Positions 42,169-59,566 of a stretch of DNA of 64,000 nt are shown here, in pieces. The DNA comes from Rebecca billardiae RCC1528. Its lineage: Eukaryota; Protista; Haptophyta. Every line of letters begins with the position of its first letter. The stretch's first letter is position 1. The stretch covers positions 1,054,001 to 1,118,000 of the forward strand of contig OZ251236.1 in assembly GCA_965240325.2 (NCBI GenBank), given 5' to 3'. A program made the translations under genes and the position numbers. The notes under the pieces are model-generated. The model was given only the letters and a program-made list of their open reading frames with translations, ran no database searches and was not told where the DNA came from.

Positions 42169-43302
42169 GCCAAGGGCGGTAAGGGCTGTCAACTCCCAGT
42201 GGCGCCGAGTGGCGGAGGTTGGTTGCCCCTCAACTCGTGCGGCCTCGCGGCGCAGCGGCTAAGTCTCCTGGGGCGCCGCCCAGGAGGGCGCGTGGGGTGC
42301 GCACGCCGCGGGCTCCTGCGGCCGCGGCAGCGGCCGCGGACACGGCGCGCGTGGTTGGTCGCATGCTAGACAGTATGTAGTACCCTCCCACGCCGCGCGC
42401 CGTGCTCGCCGGTGCCCTCGCCGTGCCTCAGGCCAGCCGCGCACGCGCGCCGCACCAATGGCCAGCCGTGGCCACGCGCCAGCCGCCGGCGCGCGCGCGG
42501 TGCGCGGTGCGGTCGGCGCGGGTCGGGCGCGCGCCCGGGGCGAGGCTTGTGTATGATGGGCGCGCGTCATGCCGCCTCGCGCCGCCGCACACGAGCTTGA
42601 TCACGTTCCACGCGGCTGCTGAAGGGTGCTCGTCGAGCATTCCTCGGCCATCAGAAATGAGCTTGGACAAGCGGCTGTGAGCGCACTGAGTGCGAGGAAC
42701 GCGAGCACTTGGGGGCTCGCGTGCCATAGTATGATGCTAGTCGTGCTCATATCAGTGGTCTGCGCTTGTCTATCACGCGTCGCTGCCTTCCCATGATCGT
42801 CTCAACATGAGCATTTTCAAACATGGCAATGCACACTCGACAGCATGAGAACGCGTGCGCGCCGACCCATGCGGGCTCCAGCGCGGCGGCGCGAGGCGGC
42901 ATGACGCGCGCCCATCATACACAAGCCTCGCCCCGGGCGCGCGCCCGACCCGCGCCGACCGCACCGCGCACCGCGCGCGCGCCGGCGGCTGGCGCGTGGC
43001 CACGGCTGGCCATTGGTGCGGCGCGCGTGCGCGGCTGGCCTGAGGCACGGCGAGGGCACCGGCGAGCACGGCGCGCGGCGTGGGAGGGTACTACATACTG
43101 TCTAGCATGCGACCAACCACGCGCGCCGTGTCCGCGGCCGCTGCCGCGGCCGCAGGAGCCCGCGGCGTGCGCACCCCACGCGCCCTCCTGGGCGGCGCCC
43201 CAGGAGACTTAGCCGCTGCGCCGCGAGGCCGCACGAGTTGAGGGGCAACCAACCTCCGCCACTCGGCGCCACTGGGAGTTGACAGCCCTTACCGCCCTTG
43301 GC
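42169..43302. mobile_element. Foldback element copy 2 (420-bp inverted arms, 294-bp spacer)
   Basis: Arms at 42169-42588 and 42883-43302 look identical by eye. CAAGGG...CCCTTG termini and internal blocks are shared with copy 1. No TSD is visible. Confidence 0.85.
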
Positions 43303-43540
43303 GGTGGCGAGCGACAAAGAAATAGAGGGGGGCGAGGCCACTGGCAGTGGCGGACGCTTTCAGCTTGGCGCACAGCTCCAGGGCGTCCCTCGGCCAGCTG
43401 AGCGCGCCGTCAGCGCGGTCGGCCGGACCGAGCCCGCGCCCGCCGGCCTCGGGCGCGAGGCGCAGCGCGCGCTTCCTCCGCCGCGCCTGCGCCGGCGCCG
43501 CCCAGCAGCCCTTGCTCCCGCCACCCTGCGTCCGGCGCCG

Positions 43541-46171
43541 ATGGAGTTTGTGTACGGCGGCAGCTACCTCGACGGCGAGATACAGTCGCAGTTCAAGGCG
43601 TACCTGCAGAAGCACAGCGCCGACGTGGTCGAGGCGATCCTGGCCGAGCTCGACGTGAGCAGGCACTACGCGGTCGAGGTGCACGCGCTCGACCTGTACG
43701 CGAGCAACATGCTGCTGGGCGACCTGCTCGTGCACCAGCCCGAGCGCACGCTGCGCCTCTTCGACGGCGCCATCTACGACTACCAGGCGGAGATGCTCGA
43801 CGAGCTGCGGCAGATGGGCGACACGCTGGCGTTCCAGATGATTGTCAAGCCCCACGTCCACGCGCGCGTGTACGCGCTCCCGCGCTGCGCCGAGCTCTCG
43901 AAGCCGACGATCACGGCCGTGCTGAACACAGACGTGGGCCATCTCCTCTCCATCTCGGGCACGGTCACGCGCGCGGCGACGGTGCGCATCCTTCACGCGG
44001 AGAAGAAGGTGGAGTGCACCAAGTGCGGCAAGGCGCACAAGGTGCGCGCGCACCGCACCGCACCGCACCGCACCGCACCGCACCGCCGCCGGCGTGCGCG
44101 CGCGCGCCGCCGGCCGAGCGGCGCGTGCCCAGCGCGCGCGGCGCAGGTGTACGCGGAGCTCGAGCGGCGGCACGAGATGGCGATGCCCCCAGAGTGCGGC
44201 AACGACGACGGCGTGCGGCGCTGCACGTGCACCGCCTTCAAGGACGTCGACGGCTCCGAGCTCTGCCGCGACATCCGCGAGCTGCGCGTGCAGGAGCAGG
44301 TGACCAAGCTGGGCGTGGGCAGCGTGCCGCGCTCGATCACCGTGGTGCTGCAGGACGACCTGGTGGAGGCGGCGAAGCCGGGGGACGACGTGATCATCAC
44401 GGGCGTCGTCGTGCGCCGCTGGAAGCCCGTGCGCGCGGACACGCGCCCCGACATCGACTTTGCCCTCCGCGCGAACCACGTGACGGTGTGCAACCAACTG
44501 GTGGGCGCGGGGCTGGTGACCACAGAGGCGCGCGCGCAGTTCGAGGCGTTCTGGCAGAGCTGGGGCGCGGGCGAGGGGCGGGTCGAGGGGCGCGACGTGA
44601 TCCTGCGCTCGGTGTGCCCCTCGCTCGACGGCCTCTTCTTCGTCAAGCTCGCCCTCGCGCTCACGCTGCTCGGCGGCGTGACGTGTGTCGACTCGAACGG
44701 GCAGCAGGTGCGCGGAGAGTCGCACTTGCTGCTGATCGGCGACCCGGGCACGGGCAAGTCGCAGGCGCTCAAGTTCGCGGCGGCGCTCTCGCCGCGCTCG
44801 GTGGTGACCACGGGGATCGGCTCGACCAGCGCGGGCCTCACCGTCACCGCGAACAAGGACGCCTCGGGCGAGTGGGTGCTCGAGGCGGGCGCGCTCGTCC
44901 TCGCGGACGGCGGCGTGTGCTGCATCGACGAGTTTGAGACGATGAAGGAGGCGGACCGGGCGACCATCCACGAGGCGATGGAGCAGCAGACGCTCTCGGT
45001 GGCGAAGGCGGGGCTGGTGTGCAAGCTGCGCACGAAGACCACCATCATCGCCGCCACCAACCCGAAGGGCGGGCGGCAGGTCGACCTCGCCTTCAACCTG
45101 GGCGCCAACACGGGCCTCGCCTCGCCCCTGCTCTCTCGCTTCGACATTGTGCTCGTGCTCTCCGACGAGGCGGACGAGGAGTGGGACGAGCAGATCGCGC
45201 ACTTCATCCTCGAGCGCGACCGGAAGCGGCGCCGCGCGGACGCCGACGCGCCGCTCGACGCGCTCGACGCGCAGCCGAGCGCGCTCGGCGCGGCGGCCGC
45301 GCGCGCCGACGACGCCGACACCGCGCGCGCCGCGCCGGGCGCGGAGGAGCCGGGCGGCGGCGCTGAGCTGTGGGACGAGGAGACGCTGCGCGCGTACATC
45401 GAGTGCGCGCGCCGCGATTTCGACCCGGTGATGACGCCGCGCGCCGACCGCGTGCTCTCCGCGTACTTTGCGCGGCAGCGCCAGGCCGAGATGCGCAACG
45501 CCGCGCGCACCACCATCCGCCTCCTCGAGTCGCTCATCCGGCTCGCGCAGGCGCACGCGCGGCTCATGTGGCGGCAGACGGTCGAGCAGCTCGACGCGGT
45601 GTACGCGATCGTGCTCATCGAGCTCGGCGCGGACGGCTGCTCCGACGGGCCGCTGCGCGCGTCGGGCCGGCGCACCAGCGTGTGCCGCTCGCAGGTGCCC
45701 GCGCCGGGCGCGTCGCACGTCGTGGCCAGCGGCTTTGAGCACGACATCCTGTGCTGGCTCGGGCTGGGCGCGGACGAGGACGAGGACGGCGGCGGCGGGG
45801 CGGCCGGCGGCGCTGCCGCGGCCGGCGAGGGCGGCGGCGCGCACGCCCACCGAGCGGCGCATCCGCCGCCGCTCGCGCCGCCTCCGCGCGCGCAGCCCGC
45901 GACGCTCGCCGAGGCGTTCCCACCCGCGCCGGGCGCCGACGGGGGCGTGCCGCTCCTCGGCGGCTACGGCGACGGCCTGCCTGCCGGCCCGGCCAAGGAC
46001 GCGCACGGCGACGGGCTGGACGGGCCGGGCGCGGGCTGGGCACCCTCGCGCGCGCCCGGTCCAGCCGTGGCCCCGCCCCGCCAACCGCTCGCTGGGAGCA
46101 ACCACCTCGACCCGGCGCTCGGCTTCGGCGCGGGCGCCACCGACGACGCCGACGAGCCTTGGCTCTGGTAG
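43541..46171 (+). CDS. MCM9: DNA helicase MCM9
   Basis: RGESHLLLIGDPGTGKSQ, TTGIGSTSAGLTVTA, LEAGALVLADGGVCCIDEF, IHEAMEQQTLSVAKAGLVCKL and RTTIRLLESLIRLAQAHARLM. In-frame intron at 44042-44146. Confidence 0.93.
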   Translation: MEFVYGGSYLDGEIQSQFKAYLQKHSADVVEAILAELDVSRHYAVEVHALDLYASNMLLGDLLVHQPERTLRLFDGAIYDYQAEMLDELRQMGDTLAFQMIVKPHVHARVYALPRCAELSKPTITAVLNTDVGHLLSISGTVTRAATVRILHAEKKVECTKCGKAHKVRAHRTAPHRTAPHRRRRARARRRPSGACPARAAQVYAELERRHEMAMPPECGNDDGVRRCTCTAFKDVDGSELCRDIRELRVQEQVTKLGVGSVPRSITVVLQDDLVEAAKPGDDVIITGVVVRRWKPVRADTRPDIDFALRANHVTVCNQLVGAGLVTTEARAQFEAFWQSWGAGEGRVEGRDVILRSVCPSLDGLFFVKLALALTLLGGVTCVDSNGQQVRGESHLLLIGDPGTGKSQALKFAAALSPRSVVTTGIGSTSAGLTVTANKDASGEWVLEAGALVLADGGVCCIDEFETMKEADRATIHEAMEQQTLSVAKAGLVCKLRTKTTIIAATNPKGGRQVDLAFNLGANTGLASPLLSRFDIVLVLSDEADEEWDEQIAHFILERDRKRRRADADAPLDALDAQPSALGAAAARADDADTARAAPGAEEPGGGAELWDEETLRAYIECARRDFDPVMTPRADRVLSAYFARQRQAEMRNAARTTIRLLESLIRLAQAHARLMWRQTVEQLDAVYAIVLIELGADGCSDGPLRASGRRTSVCRSQVPAPGASHVVASGFEHDILCWLGLGADEDEDGGGGAAGGAAAAGEGGGAHAHRAAHPPPLAPPPRAQPATLAEAFPPAPGADGGVPLLGGYGDGLPAGPAKDAHGDGLDGPGAGWAPSRAPGPAVAPPRQPLAGSNHLDPALGFGAGATDDADEPWLW

Positions 46172-47850: not shown

Positions 47851-48592
47851 TCTCTGAATATACGGCTGAATATACGGCTGAATATACGTGGTTTTACGCG
47901 CTTGTGTGCCACTGACAGATCGATTCAGCGACCTCGATTTATTAGGGTATACCAACTTCGGATGTCACGTATGTCACATATATAGCCGTCACTGAGTCCG
48001 GATAGGTCCGGATTGGGCGCCGAATTCCGAAGCCCCGGACCCGGGGCTTCACTTTAGTACACCGCAAACGAGCTACTGCTAGCCATTGCGCGTGCTGTGA
48101 CTCGATGTCAATTGCCCCAGCGTGGCCTGTCTGTGGGTGCCCCAATCGGCGGCGGCGACCCCTTCTCTGCCTGTAGTTCGACTCAGATGCATGCATTCAA
48201 ACCAGAAAATCCGACGAATTTCCGGACAGGTTACCGTGACGCTTTTTTATTTGCTTTTCTTTTATGTGCTTCTGCTACAATAAGATGATGACTATATAGC
48301 AGTCGCGTCACAGTCGTAAGTGAGTACAGTAGTAGATCGTCAGGCTATATAGATCATATACAGCGCAACTGGCGGGCGCTAGTAGACTCTGCTACATGCA
48401 CGATACTACTTTAATAGTAGTCTGCTGACAGGATGTGATGGCAGGCGGATGGACTGCATCAATATAATAGTTATTAATAAGACGGGACCGACGATGCATG
48501 GTGCGGGACCTCGTCGCCGCTACTGTCCGAAGAGACCCCGTGGTGCACGCACGGTGCGCCTACGCCGAGCGCGTGCCCGGGGCCGAAGGAAG

Positions 48593-50314
48593 CTAGCCGA
48601 AAATGTCGTCGCGGTCTAACTTCCTTCCCCGGTGGCGCCCGACAAACGTGCGCAGGTTCCACGGGTTGGACTCGAGCCTGTCGCGAAACAAGTTGGCGAT
48701 GCGCTCCTCAAAGCCTTGGTCGTTCATGAGGCGACTGGTGAAGGGGCTCGAGCCAAAGATGGACGCAAAGCACACGTGGTCCTCATCGCCGTGCGCCTGC
48801 AGCACATCGAGCCAGTGCTGGAAGCGCGCGTGCGCACGGTCGTCGAGCAAGCGCGCGGCCGTGCTGTTGCTCATGAATGTGACGAAGGGCTGCGCGCCGA
48901 GCACACCGAGCCAGTACTGAAAGCGCGCATGCGCATGGTCGTCGAGCAAGCGCGCGGCCACGGTGCCGCTCATGAATGTGACGAAGAGCTGCGCGCCGAG
49001 CACACCGAGCCAGTACTGAAAGCGCGCATGCGCATGGTCGTCGAGCAAGCGCGCGGCCACGCTGTTGCTCATGAATGTGACGAAGAGCTGCGCGTCGTCG
49101 AGCAAAACGAGCCAGTACTGAAAGCGCGCATGCGCATGGTCGTCGAGCAAGCGCGCGGCCACGCTGTTGCTCATGAATGTGACGAAGAGCTGCGCGTCGT
49201 CGAGCAACTCGAGCCAGTACTGAAAGCGCGCATGCACATGGTCGTCGAGCAAGCGCGCGGCCACGCTGTCGCACATGAATGTGACGAAGAGCTGCGCGCC
49301 GAGCACACCGAGCCAGTACTGAAAGCGCGCATGCGCATGGTCGTCGAGCAAGCGCGCGGCCACGCTGTTGCTCATGAATGTGACGAAGAGCTGCGCGCCG
49401 AGCACCTTGAACCAGTACTCGAGCCGGTCGTCGTGAGCGGAGAGGTCCAAGTACATCGCCCCATGCGTGAGCACGGCGCGCAGCACGGCGCCTCCGCGCG
49501 CGTGCCACTTGCGCAGCAGACCTTCCACCGCGGGCACGTGCGCGTCCATGTGCCGCAGGTGAGCGTGCTCGCGCAAGAATCGGCCGCTGTCGTTGTCGTA
49601 GAGCAGTCGTGTGAGCATCACGCGCGCCTTGGCTCTGGCTTCCACCTCCGCGGCCAGGTCACCCAGCGCAGCGTCGATGCGCGCGTCGACCTGCGAGTAG
49701 TCGTCCGGTGTCTTAAGCGCGCGCATGCCGTTGAGCCTGCACATCGTCAGCTTGAACAGCTTCACGGCGCCTGGGGCTCGCGCGGCGACGAGGTGCGCCG
49801 AGGGATGCGGCGCGCCTTCGAGCGCGAGGAAGCGGTGTTGGCCGAGCTCGTAGAGCGAGACGAGGTGCTGCTCGGAGATGAATGCGATGCGCTTCACGAG
49901 ACCCAGCTCGATGGCCTTGTCGAATGCCGCCTGGCATGTGCGCCCCGCCACGTACGCGCATGCGGGGAAGCGCGCGCACATCGAGTCCAGGTGCTCGTTG
50001 AAGCGCGTGAGCCAGGCGGACACGAGCTCGACGTCGCTCGCAAAGCTCGCGAGCACGCGCTGGTCAATCGCAGCATTCGTTGTGGTTGAGCTGAGCGTGC
50101 ACAGGTCCACCCAGGTGATGGGCGGCACGGGCGTAAGCAGCTCGCGCATCTCGATCTCGGTGCGGCTCACGTTCGTGACGCTCGCGTTGGCTTGCGGGTA
50201 CAGGCCCAGCACAAAGAGAGCATTGGTTCCCCGCGGCGTGAGCGGGGGCTCCCAAGACTTGGCATCGAAGCCTTGGCGCAAACACGTCCGTTGGCGCTTC
50301 ACGAGATCGTTCAT
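48593..50314 (-). CDS. 573-aa protein: putative UDG-like N-terminal domain plus six 33-34-aa tandem helical repeats
   Basis: Intact intronless ORF from ATG 50314. Repeats at 48818-49417, consensus YWLGVLG-AQLFVTFM[SNS]VAARLLDDHAHARFQ. N-terminal motifs LFVLGLYP, WVDLC, YVAGR and PHPS. Confidence 0.85.
   Translation of the reverse strand: MNDLVKRQRTCLRQGFDAKSWEPPLTPRGTNALFVLGLYPQANASVTNVSRTEIEMRELLTPVPPITWVDLCTLSSTTTNAAIDQRVLASFASDVELVSAWLTRFNEHLDSMCARFPACAYVAGRTCQAAFDKAIELGLVKRIAFISEQHLVSLYELGQHRFLALEGAPHPSAHLVAARAPGAVKLFKLTMCRLNGMRALKTPDDYSQVDARIDAALGDLAAEVEARAKARVMLTRLLYDNDSGRFLREHAHLRHMDAHVPAVEGLLRKWHARGGAVLRAVLTHGAMYLDLSAHDDRLEYWFKVLGAQLFVTFMSNSVAARLLDDHAHARFQYWLGVLGAQLFVTFMCDSVAARLLDDHVHARFQYWLELLDDAQLFVTFMSNSVAARLLDDHAHARFQYWLVLLDDAQLFVTFMSNSVAARLLDDHAHARFQYWLGVLGAQLFVTFMSGTVAARLLDDHAHARFQYWLGVLGAQPFVTFMSNSTAARLLDDRAHARFQHWLDVLQAHGDEDHVCFASIFGSSPFTSRLMNDQGFEERIANLFRDRLESNPWNLRTFVGRHRGRKLDRDDIFG
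48818..49417 (-). repeat. Coding tandem repeat, 6 units of 99 or 102 bp
   Basis: Units of 33, 33, 34, 34, 33 and 33 aa total 600 bp and are near-identical at the DNA level. Confidence 0.97.
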
Positions 50315-51453
50315 GGCCAGGCCGCCGCCGACGACACAACCACGAGCGCGGACTGCGTCGGCGGATGGCGGTTGGCGGATCTCATTCGTACGACCAGTAA
50401 AACGGAATACCCGTCTTCTGATCAAGGGTACTGTACACTACAGTTTACCCCGCAAGGCCGCAGAATTCCGGATTTCGCGTGGTCCACCGGAAACTGACCG
50501 GCAAGCGAGCCCGTTGGCCGGCGGGACGAGAAATGGCGGGAGCTGTGGGCGCGAGATCCCGTGTCAGATGGACTGCTGCCCTTGACGAGCGCCGAGCCGC
50601 AAATGTAGAATGCCGTGGTTCGCCCCCTGGTCGAAGCCGTCGTGGATGGCACGAGATCTGCGATTCGAACGGTGCGGGCTGGCCACTCGGGTCCGACGAG
50701 CCCACGGACTCCTGTCCGCACCGAGATCGAGCTGACGCATCTTGTCTCTTCTCGGCGTGGCCACTCCTTGCCATTCAGTCGTGAACTCACGAGCGACGAC
50801 GAGGAGAATGACTTTGTAAGATACGAGAGCTGTGCGCCCTTGTAAGAGCTCGTCCAGATTGTGGAAATCACGCAGCTTGTCCTGCTCGGGAGAGGCGTCA
50901 ACGTGGAGCAGCAGTGGATCAGAGCCAGGTTCACCTAAACCATGAAACACATGCTGTAGAGGGTGGCAAAGAACCTGAGCGTTGGGCATCCACCGGTACG
51001 CACGAGGCGCACAAAAGCGTGGGCGTGCCTGAGCCTGTGATGGACTGCTCCTCATGCGTGCTGCTGGCCATTGTGCGTGCGCGTGTGTGCGTGTGAGCGT
51101 GTGCACACTGCGCATACGCATACATACAGCTTGTCCTTCCTTCTCTACGAGATCGTGTCGTCGCGCGGGCTCGGAGGCCGCGCCTCTTCCGCGCAGGCAA
51201 ATACCGGCTGGTCAATGTCACCTTGCCCCGTGCGGGCACACCATCGCGCAGCGCGTGACGAGCCGCCGCCCTGGGTGCGAGGCGGCGCTCGGACGAGCCG
51301 CCGCCGATCCAAGCGTCGTGGCCATGCAAGGTACAGTAGTGTGGCAAGGAGGGAGCGAAGATTCGAATACTGTAAGAACGATTCGGAGTCCACGAGGTGG
51401 TGGTGAGCTTGGGGGCGCGCGCCCACGCGATCATCGATGGCGCCGCGAGAGCC

Positions 51454-52590
51454 ATGATGAACGACGAGCTCGCCCGCCTGCTCGCCGCCGGCGACGTCGA
51501 TGCCTTGCGCAGTGCGCTCAAGCAACAGCAGGCGCGTGAGCAGGACGCTGTGCCCGCGAACGATGGCCCGGAGCTGCCGCAGCCGCCGCGTGCGACCATT
51601 CAGACCGAAGCAGCGATTGTTCCGGAGCTCATTGCGCTGCGCAAGCGGCACGCGGTGCACTTCCGACTGCTCCTTCCAGCAGATGCCGACGACTTGGCCG
51701 TGGGTGCACGTGAATACCATCTGGTCGACTCGCGCGTCATGGGCAAAATCTGCTGGCCGGCAGCAGAGGCACTCGCCGCGCATGTCCTGACCACGGCCTC
51801 GCGTTGGCAGCTCCCGGCGCCGGCTGTTTTCCTGGAGCTGGCCGCGGGCTGCGCACTGCCCAGCCTTGTGGCAGCGAAGATGCGCGTTTTCTCCCGCGTG
51901 GTTACGACAGATGTCACCGCCGAGCGCGTGGCCATCGCCGCGCACAACGCCGAGCTCAACGGCGTCGCCCTTGAGGCCCGCGAGCTCGAGTTCGCGGACT
52001 GCGAGAAGCTCGTGCAGCTTGCCCTGCGCAGCTCGAGCCACGCGGAGGGGGGCGCGCGCAGCTTCGTGGTATGCGCGGCGGACGTGCACTACAACCCGAC
52101 ATCTCTCGAAGACTTCTTCGCCGCCGGCGCTGCCCTCGTGCAGCGCGCCACAGCGCGCGATGACCTGTCGGACCCTCTCGAATGCCGGCTCGTGCTGGCT
52201 CGATCCTCAACCTTCGCACACAACGATGAGCATATGTGGGCGGCCGCGCGCGCGAACCGTTTCGATGCCGTGTCCACGACAGAATACGGAGCAGCCGGCG
52301 TCCTCCATTCCGCGAGTGCGACGCTCTTCGAGCCCAACAATGACGAGAGCGTGCACATCTTCACCTTTGCGCCCCAGGATGCTCCAGAAGCGGCTGCACC
52401 AGAGGCCGCCCCTGCACGCGCGCAAGAGGCGCAGGGTGCGGAGGCTCCATCGAGCGCGCCAGATCCAGAGGCAGCTAGTGCCGTCTCTCGCTTCCCGGGG
52501 GTGGATGAAGCGGCTACTCTGATGGCGGGGGCATCCCTGGAGCAGCAGCTGCACCCGCATCAATCCTCCAGCACTCTCCCTTACGCGTGA
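51454..52590 (+). CDS. Seven-beta-strand protein-lysine methyltransferase (METTL21/family 16-like)
   Basis: GKICWPAAEALA, VFLELAAGCALPSLVAA, VVTTD, NAELN and CAADVHY. Confidence 0.8.
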   Translation: MMNDELARLLAAGDVDALRSALKQQQAREQDAVPANDGPELPQPPRATIQTEAAIVPELIALRKRHAVHFRLLLPADADDLAVGAREYHLVDSRVMGKICWPAAEALAAHVLTTASRWQLPAPAVFLELAAGCALPSLVAAKMRVFSRVVTTDVTAERVAIAAHNAELNGVALEARELEFADCEKLVQLALRSSSHAEGGARSFVVCAADVHYNPTSLEDFFAAGAALVQRATARDDLSDPLECRLVLARSSTFAHNDEHMWAAARANRFDAVSTTEYGAAGVLHSASATLFEPNNDESVHIFTFAPQDAPEAAAPEAAPARAQEAQGAEAPSSAPDPEAASAVSRFPGVDEAATLMAGASLEQQLHPHQSSSTLPYA

Positions 52591-54262
52591 GGCGCGGGCC
52601 GCTGAAATCAAGCGCCGAGCAGTGTCAGAAATGCCTCGTATCGTCAGTTTCAATCCGCAATCGACGCGCTGACAATCCACAATCGGTGCGCTTGGCGCCC
52701 TCGGCGTGCGCCCAGTCAATCGCCGACTGAATTGCGGTGTCATAATAACCGGGCTGCGGGACCTAGCTAGTAGCTGATCGCCCGTCGCCACAGCCTGGAC
52801 TGCTGGAGTCGCTGCCCGGCCCGCGCTTCAAGCTGATCAGCTTCACTGACTGCACCGTCCTGACTGTGCGGCAGGACGAGCGAGTGCCCATTGCAATCAC
52901 TCAATCAGGGATACGGAGACTATATATATATATGGGTGTCCGTTGCACAGCTTCGTGATGCGCTCTTCGTCCGCGCCCTCTCGCAGGACTAGCCAGGTCC
53001 TGGATCCCTTTGCGGATCCGGTCGAGACAGAGAGTCTAACTAACTACTGTCATACCCGGATCCGGGGGGGGGGGGGCACATTGCCCGCCTAGTTACTAGT
53101 AGGGCTCATGGCGGCACTGGCTGCATACCGTACGGTACACCGGCGGCAAGTGGTGGTCGGCCTCCGCCCCACGACGAGCGGCCGGCCATCCCCGTCTAAC
53201 GCACTACAGTATGACCTAGCTACCCGGGTACAGGAGTGGATACGGGCTAACTCACTTAACTGTTTATAACTTAACTGGACCGACAGGGGCTATCTGGACA
53301 CTCAGCGGGCCGGCGGCCTCTTGGCGAGGGCTCGTGGGCGAACGAGCACGAGCGCCCACTGGCGGGTCCCCACGACGGCGCACGATGTTTGCAGACCTCA
53401 CCTGGTCGTGGGGCGTCGTCTGCGCACGCGCCAGGTCGCGCTTCTCGACACCTTCGCCTTGTTTCGTGAGTTCCGCGCATTAAGGCCGAACGCTAGCGTT
53501 TCAAGCCGCAATGCGCGTGCGCGGACTCAGGAAGGGCGGACTCCGAGGCAAGGCGCGGTTGCGCTGGCGTGGGTAGGTCCCAGAGCAACCGTCCGAGCCG
53601 CTGCACACGCTTTTCCTCCGTGCGCGCGTCTCTGAGTTCGATTCCCATGCCTCAGCCAGTGCTAGGGGCTAATTGGACAGTGCCATTGCGGCCGCCACGC
53701 GTGGAGACGGGCCCGCAGCGCAGAAAGCGCGCTGCGGCGGAACTCCGGGGACCCCCTGAAGTCCATCCCTGGCGTCCCTTCGACCCCGATGCTCCCAAAC
53801 AGGCCTCCACGTGAGTTGGGTCGGCCACCGGGTCCAGTTTCACCCACCTGTCGTGTCCACGAGGACCAGGGCGGTGTTCACAGCAGCTTGATCTGGTTCA
53901 AGCCCGAAGCCTGCGGAAGCCCGCGAAGCTCCGGCCGGGATTTCATGAATACTCGCGGGAAATCAAAGCTGCTCCGATTTCTCAAACGTTGGAATCAGTA
54001 GGGAAAACCACAAATAGTGAGGGTTGAAAGGCTCCTACGAGAGATCGCGCGCCAATTGAAGGCTTTCATCACGGATGGAGCTTATTGGAGCTACTCCCAC
54101 CGTTCGATTCTTTCGGTCAATGAAAGTCGATTTGCCCGCGCGCGCCTGCCGGTGAGCGGGCCTCTCGTTTGCAACCCGGGACGAAGCTCGGCGCGTGCGG
54201 GCGAGACCCCGCAGTCCGCACGACCGCGAAAGGCAGGAAGTTGCCCTCCTCCCCCCGCCTCG

Positions 54263-55453
54263 ATGGCCCCGCTCACCGCCGACCGCCCGCTCCGCTGGGG
54301 GCTCCTTGGGACGGGTCGCGTTGCCCATGACTTCGCGGCCGCTATCTACTCTGCACCCAACAACGAGATCACGCTTGTCGCCGGTCGTTCGCCCTCCGGC
54401 GCGCAGAAGATGGCATCGATCTACGGCGGTCGCGGCACGACGCGCGAGGGTACCGACGCCTACCAGGAGCTCGTCGAGTCGCCAGATGTGGATGTCGTGT
54501 ACGTCGGAACTTACCAGCGGGACCACGCGGCGCACGTCCTCCTCTGCCTGCGCCACGGCAAGCACGTCGTCTGCGAGAAGCCCATGTGCATGACTGCGTC
54601 CGAGGCTCGCCAGTGCGTAGCGGAGGCGCGCAAGAACCGCGTGCTGCTCGTGGAGGGTCACTGGACGCACTGCTGGCCCGCCGCGCGTGCTGCCACCCGG
54701 CTCATCCAGGAGGAGGGCAAGATCGGCGAGGTCCAGAACGTCACGTCCGACTTCTCGTTCCCATACCCCACCGACCCGAGCAAGCCCGAGTTCCAGAATG
54801 CGATGGGAGGCGGTGCGACCATGCTGGTGGGTGTCTACCCTCTCTGCATGGTCATGCGCCACCTGGGCAAGCCGTTGAGCGTCCAGGCCGCGGGCATCAC
54901 CGAGTCCACGTCGAAGGAGGGCTGCGTGGACACCTCGGCCTCCGTCGTGATGAAGTTCGATGGCGGCAAGACGGGCGTCGCGACGTACGGCTGGAAGGGC
55001 GAGGGGCGGCAGGAGACGGTCATCACCGGGGACAAGGGGTTCATCATCCTAAACAACCCGGCGCACGCGCCCATCCAGCTCACGCTCGTCGTGCAGGCGG
55101 GCGAGCGCAACAAGTACACGACCGAGGTGATGGAGTTCCCGATGCCAAAGCACCCAGAGGGCCTGCCGCCGATCATCCACCCCCACTCGGAGGGCTTCCT
55201 GTACGAGGTTCAGGCCGTGGAGGCGGCGCTTCGCGCGGGTCACGCCGAGTGCGAGTCCATGCCCATGTCCGCCACCGTGCACCTGGCCGAGACGGTCGAC
55301 AAGATCCGCATGGCCCTGGGGGTGCATTGGCACACGGACAGCCGCTGGCCCCGACTCCTGGCTCGCATGCCCGCGACCGCGCCGACCGCGCTCGCTGCCG
55401 CTGTCGGGGTGGTCGGCGCCGGCCTGACTCTTGTGATGGCTGCTGGCGGCTGA
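54263..55453 (+). CDS. Gfo/Idh/MocA oxidoreductase (dihydrodiol / D-xylose dehydrogenase-like) with a hydrophobic C-terminal tail
   Basis: LRWGLLGTGRVA, DVDVVYVGT, GKHVVCEKP and GGGATMLVGVYP. Confidence 0.9.
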   Translation: MAPLTADRPLRWGLLGTGRVAHDFAAAIYSAPNNEITLVAGRSPSGAQKMASIYGGRGTTREGTDAYQELVESPDVDVVYVGTYQRDHAAHVLLCLRHGKHVVCEKPMCMTASEARQCVAEARKNRVLLVEGHWTHCWPAARAATRLIQEEGKIGEVQNVTSDFSFPYPTDPSKPEFQNAMGGGATMLVGVYPLCMVMRHLGKPLSVQAAGITESTSKEGCVDTSASVVMKFDGGKTGVATYGWKGEGRQETVITGDKGFIILNNPAHAPIQLTLVVQAGERNKYTTEVMEFPMPKHPEGLPPIIHPHSEGFLYEVQAVEAALRAGHAECESMPMSATVHLAETVDKIRMALGVHWHTDSRWPRLLARMPATAPTALAAAVGVVGAGLTLVMAAGG

Positions 55454-55890
55454 ATCTAGTACGAGTGCTGCTTCCTCTCGGCGCGGACGCTTTGCCAGCT
55501 GCTGCATGCAGCCGGCACGCGGGCCGGCAGACGAGCGTGACTACGTACGAAGTACGGGCCCGGCGACGGACCTAATCAGTCATGAGACTCGTGGGCTGAT
55601 GCGCGGGCGGCCTCGTCGCGGGCGGCCACTGTGAAGCCTGTGCCCTGACTGGCCACGGCCCACTCCCGCAGCCTGGCAGTCACTGTCACTATTCCAGTGG
55701 CACGGTCTGCGCGTGGATCAATTACATCCAATATCCATACTCGTTTTACCTGAAGTCTTCATAAAGTCTGTGAGTCCGAAGAACGCGACCGTCGCGGTTT
55801 AGTGAATATTAGACGCGCAGCCGCAGAGACCGTGAGAGAGTCAATAGTCATCACTCGGACTCGGAGTCACTGGCAGTGAGTCGCAGACGG

Positions 55891-56157
55891 CCCCCCCGAA
55901 AGCCAAAGCCAAAGGTCTCGTCAGAGTGAGTCACTACAGTAGGAGCGTGAGCGAAAGCCGGGCCCGGGGGGCCGGGGGGGGGGGGGGGGGCAAGTACTCC
56001 GCAAAATCGTCAATAAAAAGATCGCGATATAATGGCGCGCGTGATTTTGGGCGCGGTACTACGACTTATGGCGCACGCCCCCCCCCCGAAAGGTCTGAGC
56101 GTGAGCGAAAGCCGGGGGGGGGGGGCGGCGCACGTGCTCCGCAAAATCAAAAAGAGG
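55891..56157. repeat. Degenerate direct repeat with poly-C/poly-G tracts
   Basis: Two copies of CCCCCCCGAAAG...GAGCGTGAGCGAAAGCCGGG-(G)n-...CTCCGCAAAATC. Confidence 0.7.
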
Positions 56158-57973
56158 ATGCGCGCAGGATTTTGGGGATTTTTGTAGCAGATGTGACCGG
56201 ACCCCTAGTGGACGCATTTCGCTGCCAATGATTGCGTTTGTAGTAGATGCTAATTTTAACGATAGTAACACTTAGGGGAATGCAGGGTGGAATAGCACAT
56301 AACACCAGCCGTGTGTTCGAACATTCCGTCATAGTAAGATGCTTGAATTGTAAGAGCCTGAAACAGCTCGCCAACCATAGAAAAGAGAGATTCGGTCGGC
56401 TTTTATGTCGCTTGAAGTAAAGTATTGCCGGCATCTGAAGTCATGAACCGTCGCTTCTCAGTGGCGGATATCATCAGGTTATGGCGCGATGTTCTAGGGC
56501 ACGCGATCCGCATCGTTTCGCACGAACCCTCGCGGGCGACGAGATATATCATTGTCAAAGTCCAAGGCAGCCATCGGCGCCATTCCCCAGCTCGAGACTT
56601 TAATTCCAAGGCGCTGAGCAATTTCAGCCGCCAAGCTACAGACTTTCATCATGCAATTCAATCGGTTTCACCATTCAAGAGCAAGGCCAACAGCAGCCAT
56701 TGTTCATGCAAGTTACTACTCCAAAGATAAGGAGCATCGGCACACACATCACATGAGGTCTTCGGACTACACATCCAAGGGTCCAGGGATTCTTCACCAC
56801 TTGGGAAGGTACCCTGAACTGGACCAGAGACTACCATGCAGTCATCAGAACTTTCTTTTCATTTCGAGGAGACGTCCCGATCATCACAGGAAGCTTTCGT
56901 GCAATGACCCGAAGGCAATCAACGGAATTCCGAGAGCATTCCGACCGAGGAAAGCAGGCACACGAAGATTCCAAAATCTTCGATGCCACTTCCATCAGCT
57001 TTCACCAGACTGAAACATCAGCCAACCTGAAACCACCGCCAGCAAGGGGGACGCCCCTTCGCCCCACGAAACACAGTAAGGACCGCACGACACGCGCGAA
57101 GCGCCAATCATGAGCTCACGGGTGCAAAACGTCGTCCGATCCTACGATCAGCGCAAGCGGACCCGCATCGATCGGCTCCGCCACCACGGGAGCCCCATGC
57201 TCCTCGACATTGACTTCGGCGACAACGCCGGATCGGCACGGAACGACACCGGCCGCAAGGAAGACATCGAGTTCCCATCCTCGCGATGGTACGACCAGGG
57301 CGGGAGCCCGCGTACCTTCTACGAGGACTGTCGCAGCTCCATCGAGAACCGCGACCGCCACGACGGACACTACCCGCGTGGCGAGCAAGGCCCCAGTCGC
57401 CAAGGCAACGGCGGCGGCCGGCATCACGCACCGACCGAGTACAAGCACCACCGGCGGAGCGACGACAACCTCGTACCCTACGACGGGACGTGGTTCGCGG
57501 AGAGCACAAGGCCATCCAACTCCACGCATGCGCACTGGCACCCGCCCCACTCGCGGGGCCACCGATACCATCCCTCGCAACACAGCGAGGCCGAGCGCGC
57601 CGCGCCGCGCACCGGCGCGCGCGCAACTGAACCCATGACGATCCCCAGCGCGCAGGAGCGATCGTCGGCGCACGACAAGTACCCAAACGGCCCGCGGCCC
57701 TCCGGCACGCTGGGCTGGGACTACAAGCAGCCCGTCGTGCTCCCTGAGCAATGGCGAGTGCCCCCGTCCTCGCAGAAGGACGACTCGCCGTCGTCGCAGT
57801 CGCTGCATCGCGACGCTACGACACAGACGGAATCCCCGGACTCGGCGTCGCCGACTGCGACTGGACACGACCAGCATGGAGGCAGCAGCGTCGCAGCGCC
57901 GGAGGCGGGCGCGATGGCGGGCGACCTCCCGAGACGACTGGCCTACAGTAGTGGCCTTGACCCCGACCGCTTG

Positions 57974-59566
57974 ATGACGATGAGCGTGTCGGCAGCGCGC
58001 CGCCTGGCGCTCGTGGCGGCGCTCGCGCTGCTCGCGCCGGCCGGGGCGCGGCGGCCTGCCCTCGCATCGCGCGCTGAGCGCGCGGCAGAGCGCCCGCCGG
58101 CGCCGCCGTCCAGCCGGCTGCCGCGATTAGGCCTCGCGAGGCGGCTGTGGGGCGAGCGCAGGCGCGGCGCGGCGCCGTCCAGCGCCGACGCGGCCGACGT
58201 GGCGCCGCCGACGCGGGCGAGCGAGTGGTCGCTCCGCGCGGCGGCGTTCCTGCTCATCCTCTCCCTCGGCGTGGTCTCGCTCGCGCCCGCGCCCGCGCTG
58301 ATCGCGCGGCTTGGCACGGAGCCGGCGATGACGCGGCTGCAGTGGCTCTCCGCCACCTCCGCCGTCACCGAGATCGGGCTGACGCCGCTCGTGGGCGCGC
58401 TGGTGGACGACGTGGGCCGGAAGCCGATCCTGATGCTCACCCTCCTCTCCGTCGCGCTGATCAACGGCGCCGTCGCCGCCTCGCCCGTCACGCCGCTCGT
58501 GTGCGCGTCCAAGTTTTGGAACGCGCTCGTGATCGGTCTTTTCTTCCTCACGGCGCAGGCGACGCTCGCGGACATGTACCGCGCGCACCCGCGCGCGCTC
58601 GCGGCGGCGTCGGGCGTGATCTTCGCGCTGGTCAACGGCGGCTTCGCCGCGGGCGTGCAGCTCTCCGCCGCGCTGCCCAAGGGCCTGCACGCGCCGTACG
58701 CGGTCTCGGCGCTCGCGGCGGCGTGCGCGCTGCTCATCGTGAGCCGCGGCACGCTCGAGACGATGCCGCCGTCGGAGCGCAAGGTGTTCCGCGCGCGCAA
58801 GGCGCTCGCCTCGCCGCTCTCGTGCCTGCTCCTCTTCCGCACCTCGCCCAAGCTCTCCGCGCTCTCCGCCCTCGTCGTGCTCCAGCTGCTCCCCCTCTTC
58901 ATGGGCGACGTGCTGCAGGTGCACGCGCTCGAGGTCTGGAGCCTGCGCCCGACGGAGGTTGTCTTCTTCTTCTCCATCCTCGGCGCGTCGGGCGTGCTGG
59001 CGAACACGGCGGGCGGGCACCTGGTGCGCCGGCTGGGGATCCGCGGGTTCACCGTCATCGCCACCGTCTCGCACCTCCTCTTCTGGGCGGGCATGTGCAC
59101 GTCGCACCGCGCGGCCGTCGCGCTCTCGGTGGTTGGCGCGCTCGGCGCCGCGCGCTCGCTCGGCGTGTCCACGCTCATCACGGCGGAGGGCACGCGCGCG
59201 GGGCGGCCGCAGGGCGAGCTGTCGGGCGCGCGGGCGAACCTGATCGCCGTGCTCAAGGTGATCGGCCCGGTGCTCTACTCGCAGCTCTTCGTCCGCGGCC
59301 GCGCGCTCGGCGCCGCGCAGCTGCCCTTCACGTTCAACGTGGCGCTGATGGTGGCCGCGCTCGCGCTCGCGCACACCGTCCTTTCTGACGAGTCGGGCGC
59401 GGCGGGCGGCGCGGCGGAGGGCGGCGCGCTCGCCGCGATGGGGATGGCGCCGGGGGGCGAGGGCGGGGGCGATGCCAAGGCCGCCGCGCGCCGCCGCCGC
59501 GCCGAGCCGAGGTCGCGCGCGGTGCGGGCAGCGAGCGCGCACGCCACGGCGGCGCGCGCCCCCTAG
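57974..59566 (+). CDS. MFS transporter (TetA/MFSD14-like) with a signal plus transit-like presequence
   Basis: Motif A GALVDDVGRKPIL, AQATLADMY, QGELSGA..VIGP and about 12 hydrophobic segments. A signal-peptide-like RRLALVAALALLAPAGA suggests a start at 57974 or 57980 rather than 57110. Confidence 0.85.
   Translation: MTMSVSAARRLALVAALALLAPAGARRPALASRAERAAERPPAPPSSRLPRLGLARRLWGERRRGAAPSSADAADVAPPTRASEWSLRAAAFLLILSLGVVSLAPAPALIARLGTEPAMTRLQWLSATSAVTEIGLTPLVGALVDDVGRKPILMLTLLSVALINGAVAASPVTPLVCASKFWNALVIGLFFLTAQATLADMYRAHPRALAAASGVIFALVNGGFAAGVQLSAALPKGLHAPYAVSALAAACALLIVSRGTLETMPPSERKVFRARKALASPLSCLLLFRTSPKLSALSALVVLQLLPLFMGDVLQVHALEVWSLRPTEVVFFFSILGASGVLANTAGGHLVRRLGIRGFTVIATVSHLLFWAGMCTSHRAAVALSVVGALGAARSLGVSTLITAEGTRAGRPQGELSGARANLIAVLKVIGPVLYSQLFVRGRALGAAQLPFTFNVALMVAALALAHTVLSDESGAAGGAAEGGALAAMGMAPGGEGGGDAKAAARRRRAEPRSRAVRAASAHATAARAP

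Follow-up and report, generated by a model that had tools for sequence, protein, structure and literature searches.

What is read, if anything, by a tandem protein array whose repeats are nearly identical copies of one another and differ mainly at one short loop, and what might such an array do when it is joined to an enzyme-type domain? The question is raised by a minus-strand gene of the haptophyte Rebecca billardiae RCC1528 (GenBank assembly GCA_965240325.2), which lies within a stretch of 64,000 nucleotides of contig OZ251236.1 (positions 1,054,001 to 1,118,000 of the forward strand). We refer to this whole stretch as the window and use its positions throughout. A preliminary description, made from the sequence of the window, had likened the array to the repeats found in TAL effectors (transcription activator-like effectors, TALEs) and had proposed an N-terminal enzyme domain. 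We consider it fairly probable that the protein reads DNA through a modular array and so directs a glycosylase-like domain to specific sites; its binding, its code and its catalysis are all steps that we infer.

Near-identical repeats and their variable loop

An uninterrupted open reading frame runs on the minus strand from 50425 to 48593, and its first ATG, at 50314, yields a protein of 573 residues. Homologues align with this protein along about 90% of its length, and the ATG is the likely start because the homologous proteins begin at the same N-terminus in the alignment. Tandem Repeats Finder described the core of the array as a 99-nt period in 6.2 copies with 92% matches (score 1028, positions 48801-49419), and the repeat period in the gene ranges from 99 to 102 nt. 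The loop triplets of the six core repeats are, in order, SNS, CDS, SNS, SNS, SGT and SNS, the linkers between repeats read GVLG or ELLDD/VLLDD, and degenerate cap repeats flank the core on both sides. When the five internal repeats were compared codon by codon over 29 gap-free codons, we found zero synonymous differences; apart from one Ala/Val change, only loop codons 11-13 differed. Divergence is greater in the sixth core repeat. The sequence, the repeat coordinates and the codon comparison agree with the preliminary description on the six near-identical repeats, the degenerate caps, the loop triplets and the linker variants.

The repeat family to which this array belongs is large and without a name. 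A search with the whole protein recovered 24 relatives, including four paralogues from the yellow-green alga Tribonema minus (38-45% identity across 88-94% of the length), one protein from a Pavlovales haptophyte, and metagenome proteins as the remainder. The Pavlovales protein (P0008) matches the N-terminal domain only and has no repeats of the array type. Common to all repeat-bearing relatives is a repeat of 32-38 residues, in which F-V-T-F-M is followed by three loop residues and then by V-A-A-R-L. A repeat profile built from 73 repeats and scored against 1.84 billion representative proteins matched 463 cluster representatives at E<=1e-3, 230 at E<=1e-10 and 45 at E<=1e-30. The members of the family come from algae (Tribonema, Pavlovales), marine metagenomes and giant viruses. 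One relative was found in the transcriptome of a marine eukaryote, and hence there is expression of the family somewhere. No Pfam model covers the repeat, and Pfam searches returned only spurious, repeat-driven matches for the window protein (PRY, DUF4149) and no family for the non-repeat parts of ten long relatives. A PDB sequence search with the window protein gave no match. No published account of the family turned up in literature searches that covered the motif strings and TALE-like proteins in combination with algae, glycosylases or giant viruses.

Within-protein variation was calculated for the 25 proteins with at least five repeats, with the repeats defined by a profile hidden Markov model that does not require any particular residue. 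The mean within-protein entropy was 1.41 bits at the middle loop residue versus at most 0.79 bits at every other position, and the middle loop residue was variable in all 25 proteins. A motif-anchored count gave the same picture (loop residue entropy of 1.41-1.45 bits). Among 476 repeats from 124 proteins, this residue is Asn in 160, Asp in 154 and Gly in 126, which amounts to 440 repeats (92%), and it is Ser or Thr in only 10 (2%). The preceding loop residue is Cys or Ser in 85% of these repeats, and the following one is Ser or Gly in 95%. Three to five loop types are used in 17 of the 23 long arrays, and the order of the types is unlike between close paralogues, for example between P0002 and P0003 of Tribonema. 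The preliminary description had proposed a check of just this kind, in which a code would appear as variation concentrated at the loop, with repeat types shuffled in order and number among paralogues; both features were observed.

Enzyme-type domains joined to the array

The N-terminal domain of the window protein (residues 1-220) was modelled by AlphaFold2 with a predicted local distance difference test score (pLDDT) of 93.9. In this model, the domain has the alpha/beta fold of the uracil-DNA glycosylase (UDG) superfamily with its central parallel sheet. The best Foldseek match was the family 4 UDG 4zbx (probability 1.0, E 1.5e-3), and further matches included family 5, TDG, UdgX, SMUG1 and UNG. 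VIA-align (VIA), an aligner independent of Foldseek, also ranked UDG-superfamily chains in all of its nine best places, with Z-scores from 10.4 to 6.7 (Thermotoga maritima family 4, 10.4; UdgX, 10.4; BdiUNG, 9.7; TDG, 9.6; the UDG-like domain of a phage polymerase, 9.0; family 5, 8.3; two MUG-family chains, 7.9 and 7.6; SMUG1, 6.7). The N-terminal enzyme domain that the preliminary description had put forward thus acquires a predicted superfamily. By sequence, the domain is only 9-14% identical to chains of this superfamily. No UDG family was matched by Pfam in the window protein and 13 relatives, and a search of the N-terminal profile against PDB gave chance matches only. No sequence model of known UDGs matches the domain, and by sequence it would represent a new family of the superfamily. 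A profile search for stand-alone UDG-like relatives retrieved five short or fragmentary proteins with no tie to a named family.

The conserved residues of the domain fall at the places expected for UDG motifs. The tetrapeptide G-L-Y-P (residues 37-40) follows the modelled strand 33-37, and H-P-S (residues 170-172) follows strand 160-165, which are the places of motif A and motif B, respectively. P40, D70, G124, H170 and S172 are invariant in 27 relatives, and T52 and W68 are nearly so. Tyr39 would stand at the place of the family 1 catalytic Asp, because hhalign sets GLYP on the GQDP of E. coli Ung, although this alignment is weak. Asp70 would be the equivalent of the base-reading Asn of UDGs; we infer this from topology, rather than from a residue-by-residue alignment. 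Given an invariant Asp at the place presumed to read the base, one may ask which base the domain would act on. In one relative (P0014), whose contig is giant-virus-like, motif A reads G-L-D-P (residues 21-24), with Asp as in family 1.

In the mechanism that we propose, the N-terminal third of the protein would be a diverged member of the UDG superfamily that retains the motif B histidine. Its fully conserved pocket would be formed by Y39, P40, T52, W68, D70, G124, H170 and S172, among which Y39, T52 and W68 are not strictly invariant. Such a domain could flip out a base beside the binding site of the array and would probably excise it. The protein might serve in locus-specific base excision or demethylation, take part in host-virus conflict, or have a homing-type selfish function. 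We place the likelihood that the domain is an active glycosylase at somewhat under half. Position 39 counts against it, since this position is Tyr in 23 of the 27 relatives, Phe in three and Asp in one, whereas families 1-3 have a catalytic Asp or Asn there.

One alternative accepts that the array targets DNA and takes the UDG-like domain to be something other than a glycosylase, either a non-catalytic base-flipping or lesion-reading module or a domain of other chemistry. We regard it as a lesser but serious possibility. It is favoured by the same Tyr or Phe in place of the water-activating Asp or Asn of motif A, by the lack of a match to any UDG-family sequence model, and by the existence of UDG-fold domains that are not glycosylases, such as the one within a phage family-A polymerase (9qhs) that is among the VIA matches. 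However, UDG families 4 and 5 have no polar residue at this position of motif A and are active enzymes nonetheless, and the motif B histidine is invariant and the pocket residues are conserved in the 27 relatives.

The UDG-like domain is not the only partner of the array. A UDG-like domain is present in at least 26 of the 165 best family members, while at least 14 instead carry an N-terminal domain with a nuclease-like motif of the pattern S-x-x-E ... D ... (E/D)-Y-D-G-x-x-x-H ... E-R-D-x-x-K ... V-V-R-V-R. The part of this pattern from (E/D)-Y-D-G-x-x-x-H through E-R-D-x-x-K to V-V-R-V-R is shared by sixteen relatives, with the D, H, D and R invariant. The relatives with this motif (alignment A3) include P0015, P0022, P0035, P0040, P0042, P0050, P0051, P0067, P0068 and P0089, among others. 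The DUF559 or Vsr-like PD-(D/E)xK core has the form E-x-D-G-x-x-H ... D-x-x-R ... V-x-R-F. Using a DUF559 profile built from E. coli YcjD and eight plasmid homologues, hhalign set the catalytic core of DUF559 in register with this second domain, with E 5.8e-4 and a probability of 29%; a single DUF559 sequence gave E 0.014. Searches against Pfam (with each member), PDB (with a profile, which gave chance matches only), PADLOC and PHROGs yielded nothing useful for the nuclease-like domain. The motif is suggestive of a DUF559/Vsr-like endonuclease. If the likeness is real, the relatives would represent a natural architecture of nuclease plus array.

Further relatives (P0009, P0011, P0016-P0019 and P0021) have no enzyme domain, and their N-termini resemble mitochondrial or plastid leaders. 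In all of them the array is followed by a conserved C-terminal region, and they may be organelle-targeted versions of the array. At the extreme C-terminus of the UDG-type proteins, the motif G-(R/K)-K-L-D-x-I is found in several lineages (window 48596-48640; P0001-P0005 and P0027), as the tail that also ends the Tribonema and metagenome relatives. Within the linker and N-terminal cap region, R34 of alignment A4 is almost invariant.

Three relatives were located on compact, ORFan-rich contigs (L003:1-12297, L002:1-14006 and L005:1-21320), where the genes include ribonucleotide reductase, a C1 peptidase, NADAR and KilA-N, and a fourth was on a cellular-looking contig. In a viral structure library, the array model matched a 'Megaviridae environmental sample' protein (E 1.4e-8, 30% identity); the matches under this name are BFVD entries A0A5J6VK61 and A0A5J6VJA4. 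Together, the ORFan-rich contigs and these matches argue that the family is common to algae and giant viruses. A scan of viral contigs with a degenerate DNA pattern for F-V-T-F-M-x3-V-A-A produced one chance match, on an inovirus-like contig.

Predicted fold of the array and what it may read

The array was modelled by AlphaFold2 from residues 221-573 with 24 aligned relatives, with a mean pLDDT of 86.9 and values above 90 across most repeats. In each modelled repeat, the first helix ends in F-V-T-F; after a break of two residues comes a short helix, which starts at the variable residue, and a loop of three residues then leads to a long helix. Among 350,542 PDB chains, Foldseek ranked the TAL effector dHax3 first (probability 0.99, TM-score 0.46-0.48, 17-19% identity), followed by BurrH, PthXo1, AvrBs3 and mTERF1/3/4. 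The best VIA match was the TALE 4hpz with Z 11.2, for which 318 of 353 residues were aligned at a root-mean-square deviation of 5.8, and the next were BurrH (10.8), mTERF1 (10.2), AvrBs3 (10.2) and PthXo1 (8.8). Only five of 48,161 chains reached Z 8, each of them a TALE-type (including BurrH) or mTERF structure. The alignment to 4hpz, a TALE entry with an extended N-terminal DNA-binding region, starts at residue 1 of the model. The top of both lists holds only TALE-type and mTERF solenoids, and no ARM, HEAT, TPR or PPR proteins, although those folds are much more common. TALE and mTERF proteins represent the two kinds of helical solenoid known to wrap nucleic acid. According to the model, the array is a superhelical helix-loop-helix solenoid like the solved TALE and BurrH structures, which is in line with the expectation in the preliminary description of a fold able to wrap nucleic acid.

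We propose that the C-terminal two thirds of the window protein form a TALE-like solenoid of about eight repeats, six of them near-identical, that would expose one residue per repeat, namely the central one of the S/C-[N/D/G]-S/G loop, which joins the FVTFM helix to the VAARL helix. Aided by its two neighbours, this residue would read one nucleotide of double-stranded DNA, and the order of the repeat types would therefore spell the target sequence. Several arguments speak for DNA reading. Selection appears to preserve diversity at a single loop residue while the arrays are homogenised elsewhere, and the loop alphabet consists of small polar residues and Gly, which by analogy with TAL effectors could serve base reading. 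Ser and Thr, which are good helix caps, are almost missing at this residue. In addition, the predicted fold is TALE-like, and the array recurs on two domains of DNA-enzyme type.

A number of observations weigh against this reading. Neither domain of the window protein was recognised by Pfam or PDB sequence searches. The Foldseek E-values of the array are weak (0.15 and above), and for helical repeats a Z-score below about 13 can reflect shared arrangement, as noted for VIA. The loop residue ranks first to third in variability in 20 of the 25 proteins, rather than first throughout. One or two extra protein-specific variable sites are present per protein, in the second helix or the linker; these include profile position 24 in P0002 and P0003, position 17 in P0014, and linker position 30 in the window protein, and an example is A-A-R/S/C-L in the Tribonema paralogues. 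When the loci of four relatives and the window were scanned in both orientations under a TALE-style code (D=C, G=T, N=purine), no site was found near the genes, and hits were no more numerous than for shuffled arrays; the scan carries little weight, since both the code and the place where targets should lie would have to be known first. Finally, TALE-like repeats have been defined by the pattern X6-V-X6-G-X13-L, with Val7, Gly14 and Leu29 (de Lange et al. 2015, PMC4787788), and the present repeats depart from it, since position 14 is Val or Ile and never Gly. Leu29 is also not kept in the window repeats, where positions 29-31 are Tyr, Trp or Leu. With Gly14 and Leu29 missing, the array is TALE-like in architecture but was not filed as a TALE-like member. 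The preliminary description had likewise denied that the repeats are TALE by primary sequence.

Two alternatives deny the array a one-base-per-repeat code for double-stranded DNA. The first holds that it binds nucleic acid in another way, either as a repeat for RNA or single strands of the organelle type (in the manner of PPR, OPR, HPR or mTERF) or as a reader of DNA shape or composition. The leader-bearing relatives without an enzyme domain would also fit RNA or organellar targets, mTERF is among the best fold matches, and the main loop alphabet has three letters instead of four. However, the window protein has no leader and carries the fold of a DNA-acting superfamily, and both aligners gave higher scores to TAL effectors and BurrH than to mTERF. 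As for the size of the alphabet, positions 11 and 13 add further types (for example, SNS beside CNG in one protein), so that four or more types are available per array. We consider this alternative unlikely.

According to the second alternative, which is the main rival to DNA reading and to which we assign a similarly low probability, the array is a structural or protein-binding solenoid without a recognition code, in which N, D and G are a tolerated helix-capping polymorphism and all else is homogenised by unequal crossing-over. The variable residue occupies the first turn of the short helix in the model, where N, D and G are good caps, and part of the loop alphabet could therefore be structural. 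Moreover, the window array is simple, with SNS in four of its six loops, and a Z-score near 10 is not decisive for helical repeats. Against a polymorphism of this kind, the site varies in every one of the proteins with at least five repeats while its flanking positions are nearly fixed, and the equally suitable caps Ser and Thr are used in so few of the repeats surveyed. The five core repeats that lack any synonymous change are nevertheless unlike at their loop codons, and the fusion partners of the family show DNA-enzyme folds or motifs.

In its widest form, modular DNA reading by the array would extend to the whole family. It is possible, but short of probable, that algae and giant viruses hold an undescribed programmable DNA-targeting platform, in which a TALE-fold array with its own compact code is naturally fused to base-excising or DNA-cutting domains. 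The compact code would consist of N, D or G at one residue, tuned by the two neighbouring positions.

The features of the gene and its protein are listed in the table below. The neighbours of the gene encode an MCM helicase, a PAS-kinase, a GFO/IDH/MocA oxidoreductase and an MFS transporter, which are ordinary cellular genes. The suggestion in the preliminary description that the gene lies in rearranged, possibly mobile DNA was rejected for want of evidence, since we found no direct, terminal or inverted repeats flanking the gene, no second copy of it within the window, and only these cellular neighbours. The G+C content is 0.59-0.65 at positions 48001-58000 of the window versus 0.71-0.77 on either side, which is about ten points lower, and this low-G+C stretch holds ordinary-looking cellular genes. 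Where the PAS-kinase reading frame ends, there is a perfect 12-nt tandem repeat (CTGAATATACGG, 2.9 copies, positions 47854-47888). The truncation of the kinase domain at this place points to an intron or the end of the gene.

Table. Positions in the window of the array gene, its parts and the neighbouring helicase gene
Feature	Position	Strand	Basis
Complete coding sequence, 573 residues and TAG stop (48593-48595)	48593..50314	-	Open reading frame list, sequence; intron not required
N-terminal domain, residues 1-220, predicted UDG superfamily fold	49655..50314	-	AlphaFold2 model, Foldseek, VIA
Motif A equivalent G-L-Y-P, residues 37-40, end of strand 1	50195..50206	-	Conservation, weak hhalign alignment, model strands
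Invariant Asp70 in W-V-D, end of strand 2	50105..50107	-	27/27 relatives; strand E66-70 in model
Motif B equivalent H-P-S, residues 170-172, after last core strand	49799..49807	-	Conservation; model strand E160-165
Helical linker and degenerate N-terminal cap repeats, residues 221-306, conserved HLR motif	49397..49654	-	Model pLDDT >93
Six core repeats of 33/34 residues, residues 307-506	48797..49396	-	Tandem Repeats Finder, codon comparison, predicted fold
C-terminal degenerate cap repeat (FASIF-GSS-PFTSRL) and tail with conserved G-R-K-L-D	48596..48796	-	Sequence; model pLDDT 46-73
MCM-family helicase gene (MCM OB, P-loop and lid domains; long low-complexity, high-GC tail)	43298-46171	+	

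Comparison with known systems

To our knowledge, modular DNA readers with one base per repeat have so far been limited to TAL effectors and a few bacterial relatives. If the present family reads DNA, the same architectural solution is used on a large scale in algae and giant viruses, and it offers a second, sequence-independent scaffold and code for testing how recognition works. It would also be, as far as we know, the first natural array joined to DNA-processing domains. Were the wider platform real, its members would be natural counterparts of TALENs and of TALE-guided base-modifying enzymes, with possible uses in locus-specific DNA modification, homing and host-virus conflict. For the UDG superfamily, the N-terminal domain adds a new sequence family. 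Among eukaryotes, a fungal protein was named as the first that is TALE-like by a 2024 survey (PMC11417379).

The closest known systems are the TALE-likes (TALEs of Xanthomonas, RipTALs, Bat/BurrH of Burkholderia, and MOrTL1/2). They likewise consist of tandem helical repeats of 33-35 residues whose DNA is near-identical outside a short inter-helix loop, with degenerate caps in both cases and an overlapping loop alphabet that includes the base-specifying residues D, N, G and S, and they provide the best structural matches of the predicted solenoid. The first helix of TALE repeats reads L-T-P-D-Q-V-V-A-I-A-S-H-D, and that of some relatives in the present family, M-T-T-D-Q-V-V-T-F-M-S-D-S, resembles it and keeps Val7. 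In the TALE register, however, the main variable site is position 12 here versus 13 in the TALE-likes. The present family has no Gly14-Gly15, and its loop is therefore shorter, with V-A-A-R-L directly after it. This family is eukaryotic-algal and giant-viral, rather than encoded by bacteria with type III secretion; its array model has three helical segments per repeat, and the array is naturally fused to enzyme-type domains. The Pfam model TAL_effector (PF03377) gave no match to the window protein at E<=10. Its matches in two relatives (P0017, 38 bits; P0011, 23 bits) contain no single stretch that passes, and we dismissed them as artefacts of summed sub-threshold repeats.

The mTERF proteins form the second tier of fold matches (VIA Z 10.2, 7.7 and 7.4). 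The likeness extends to helical repeats of some 30 residues with three segments in each unit, and in mTERF proteins these wrap nucleic acid; in contrast to the present array, the units are not near-identical, nor do they have one hypervariable residue. The resemblance is at the level of the fold only, since the Pfam mTERF model (PF02536) did not match the window protein.

With the UDG superfamily (families 1-6, UdgX, TDG/MUG and SMUG), the N-terminal domain shares its predicted fold, a G-x-x-P that ends strand 1 and, following the last core strand, an H-P-S, as is the case in families 1, 3 and 5. It differs in having G-L-Y-P as motif A, an invariant Asp at the presumed place of the base-reading Asn, and a fused array. 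The overall layout, a modular array linked to a nuclease-type or base-processing domain, is the same as that of engineered TALENs and TALE-linked base-modifying enzymes. Those are laboratory constructs, whereas the fusions described here are natural, place the enzyme-type domain at the N-terminus, and appear to draw on other families, namely the UDG fold and a DUF559/Vsr-like domain.

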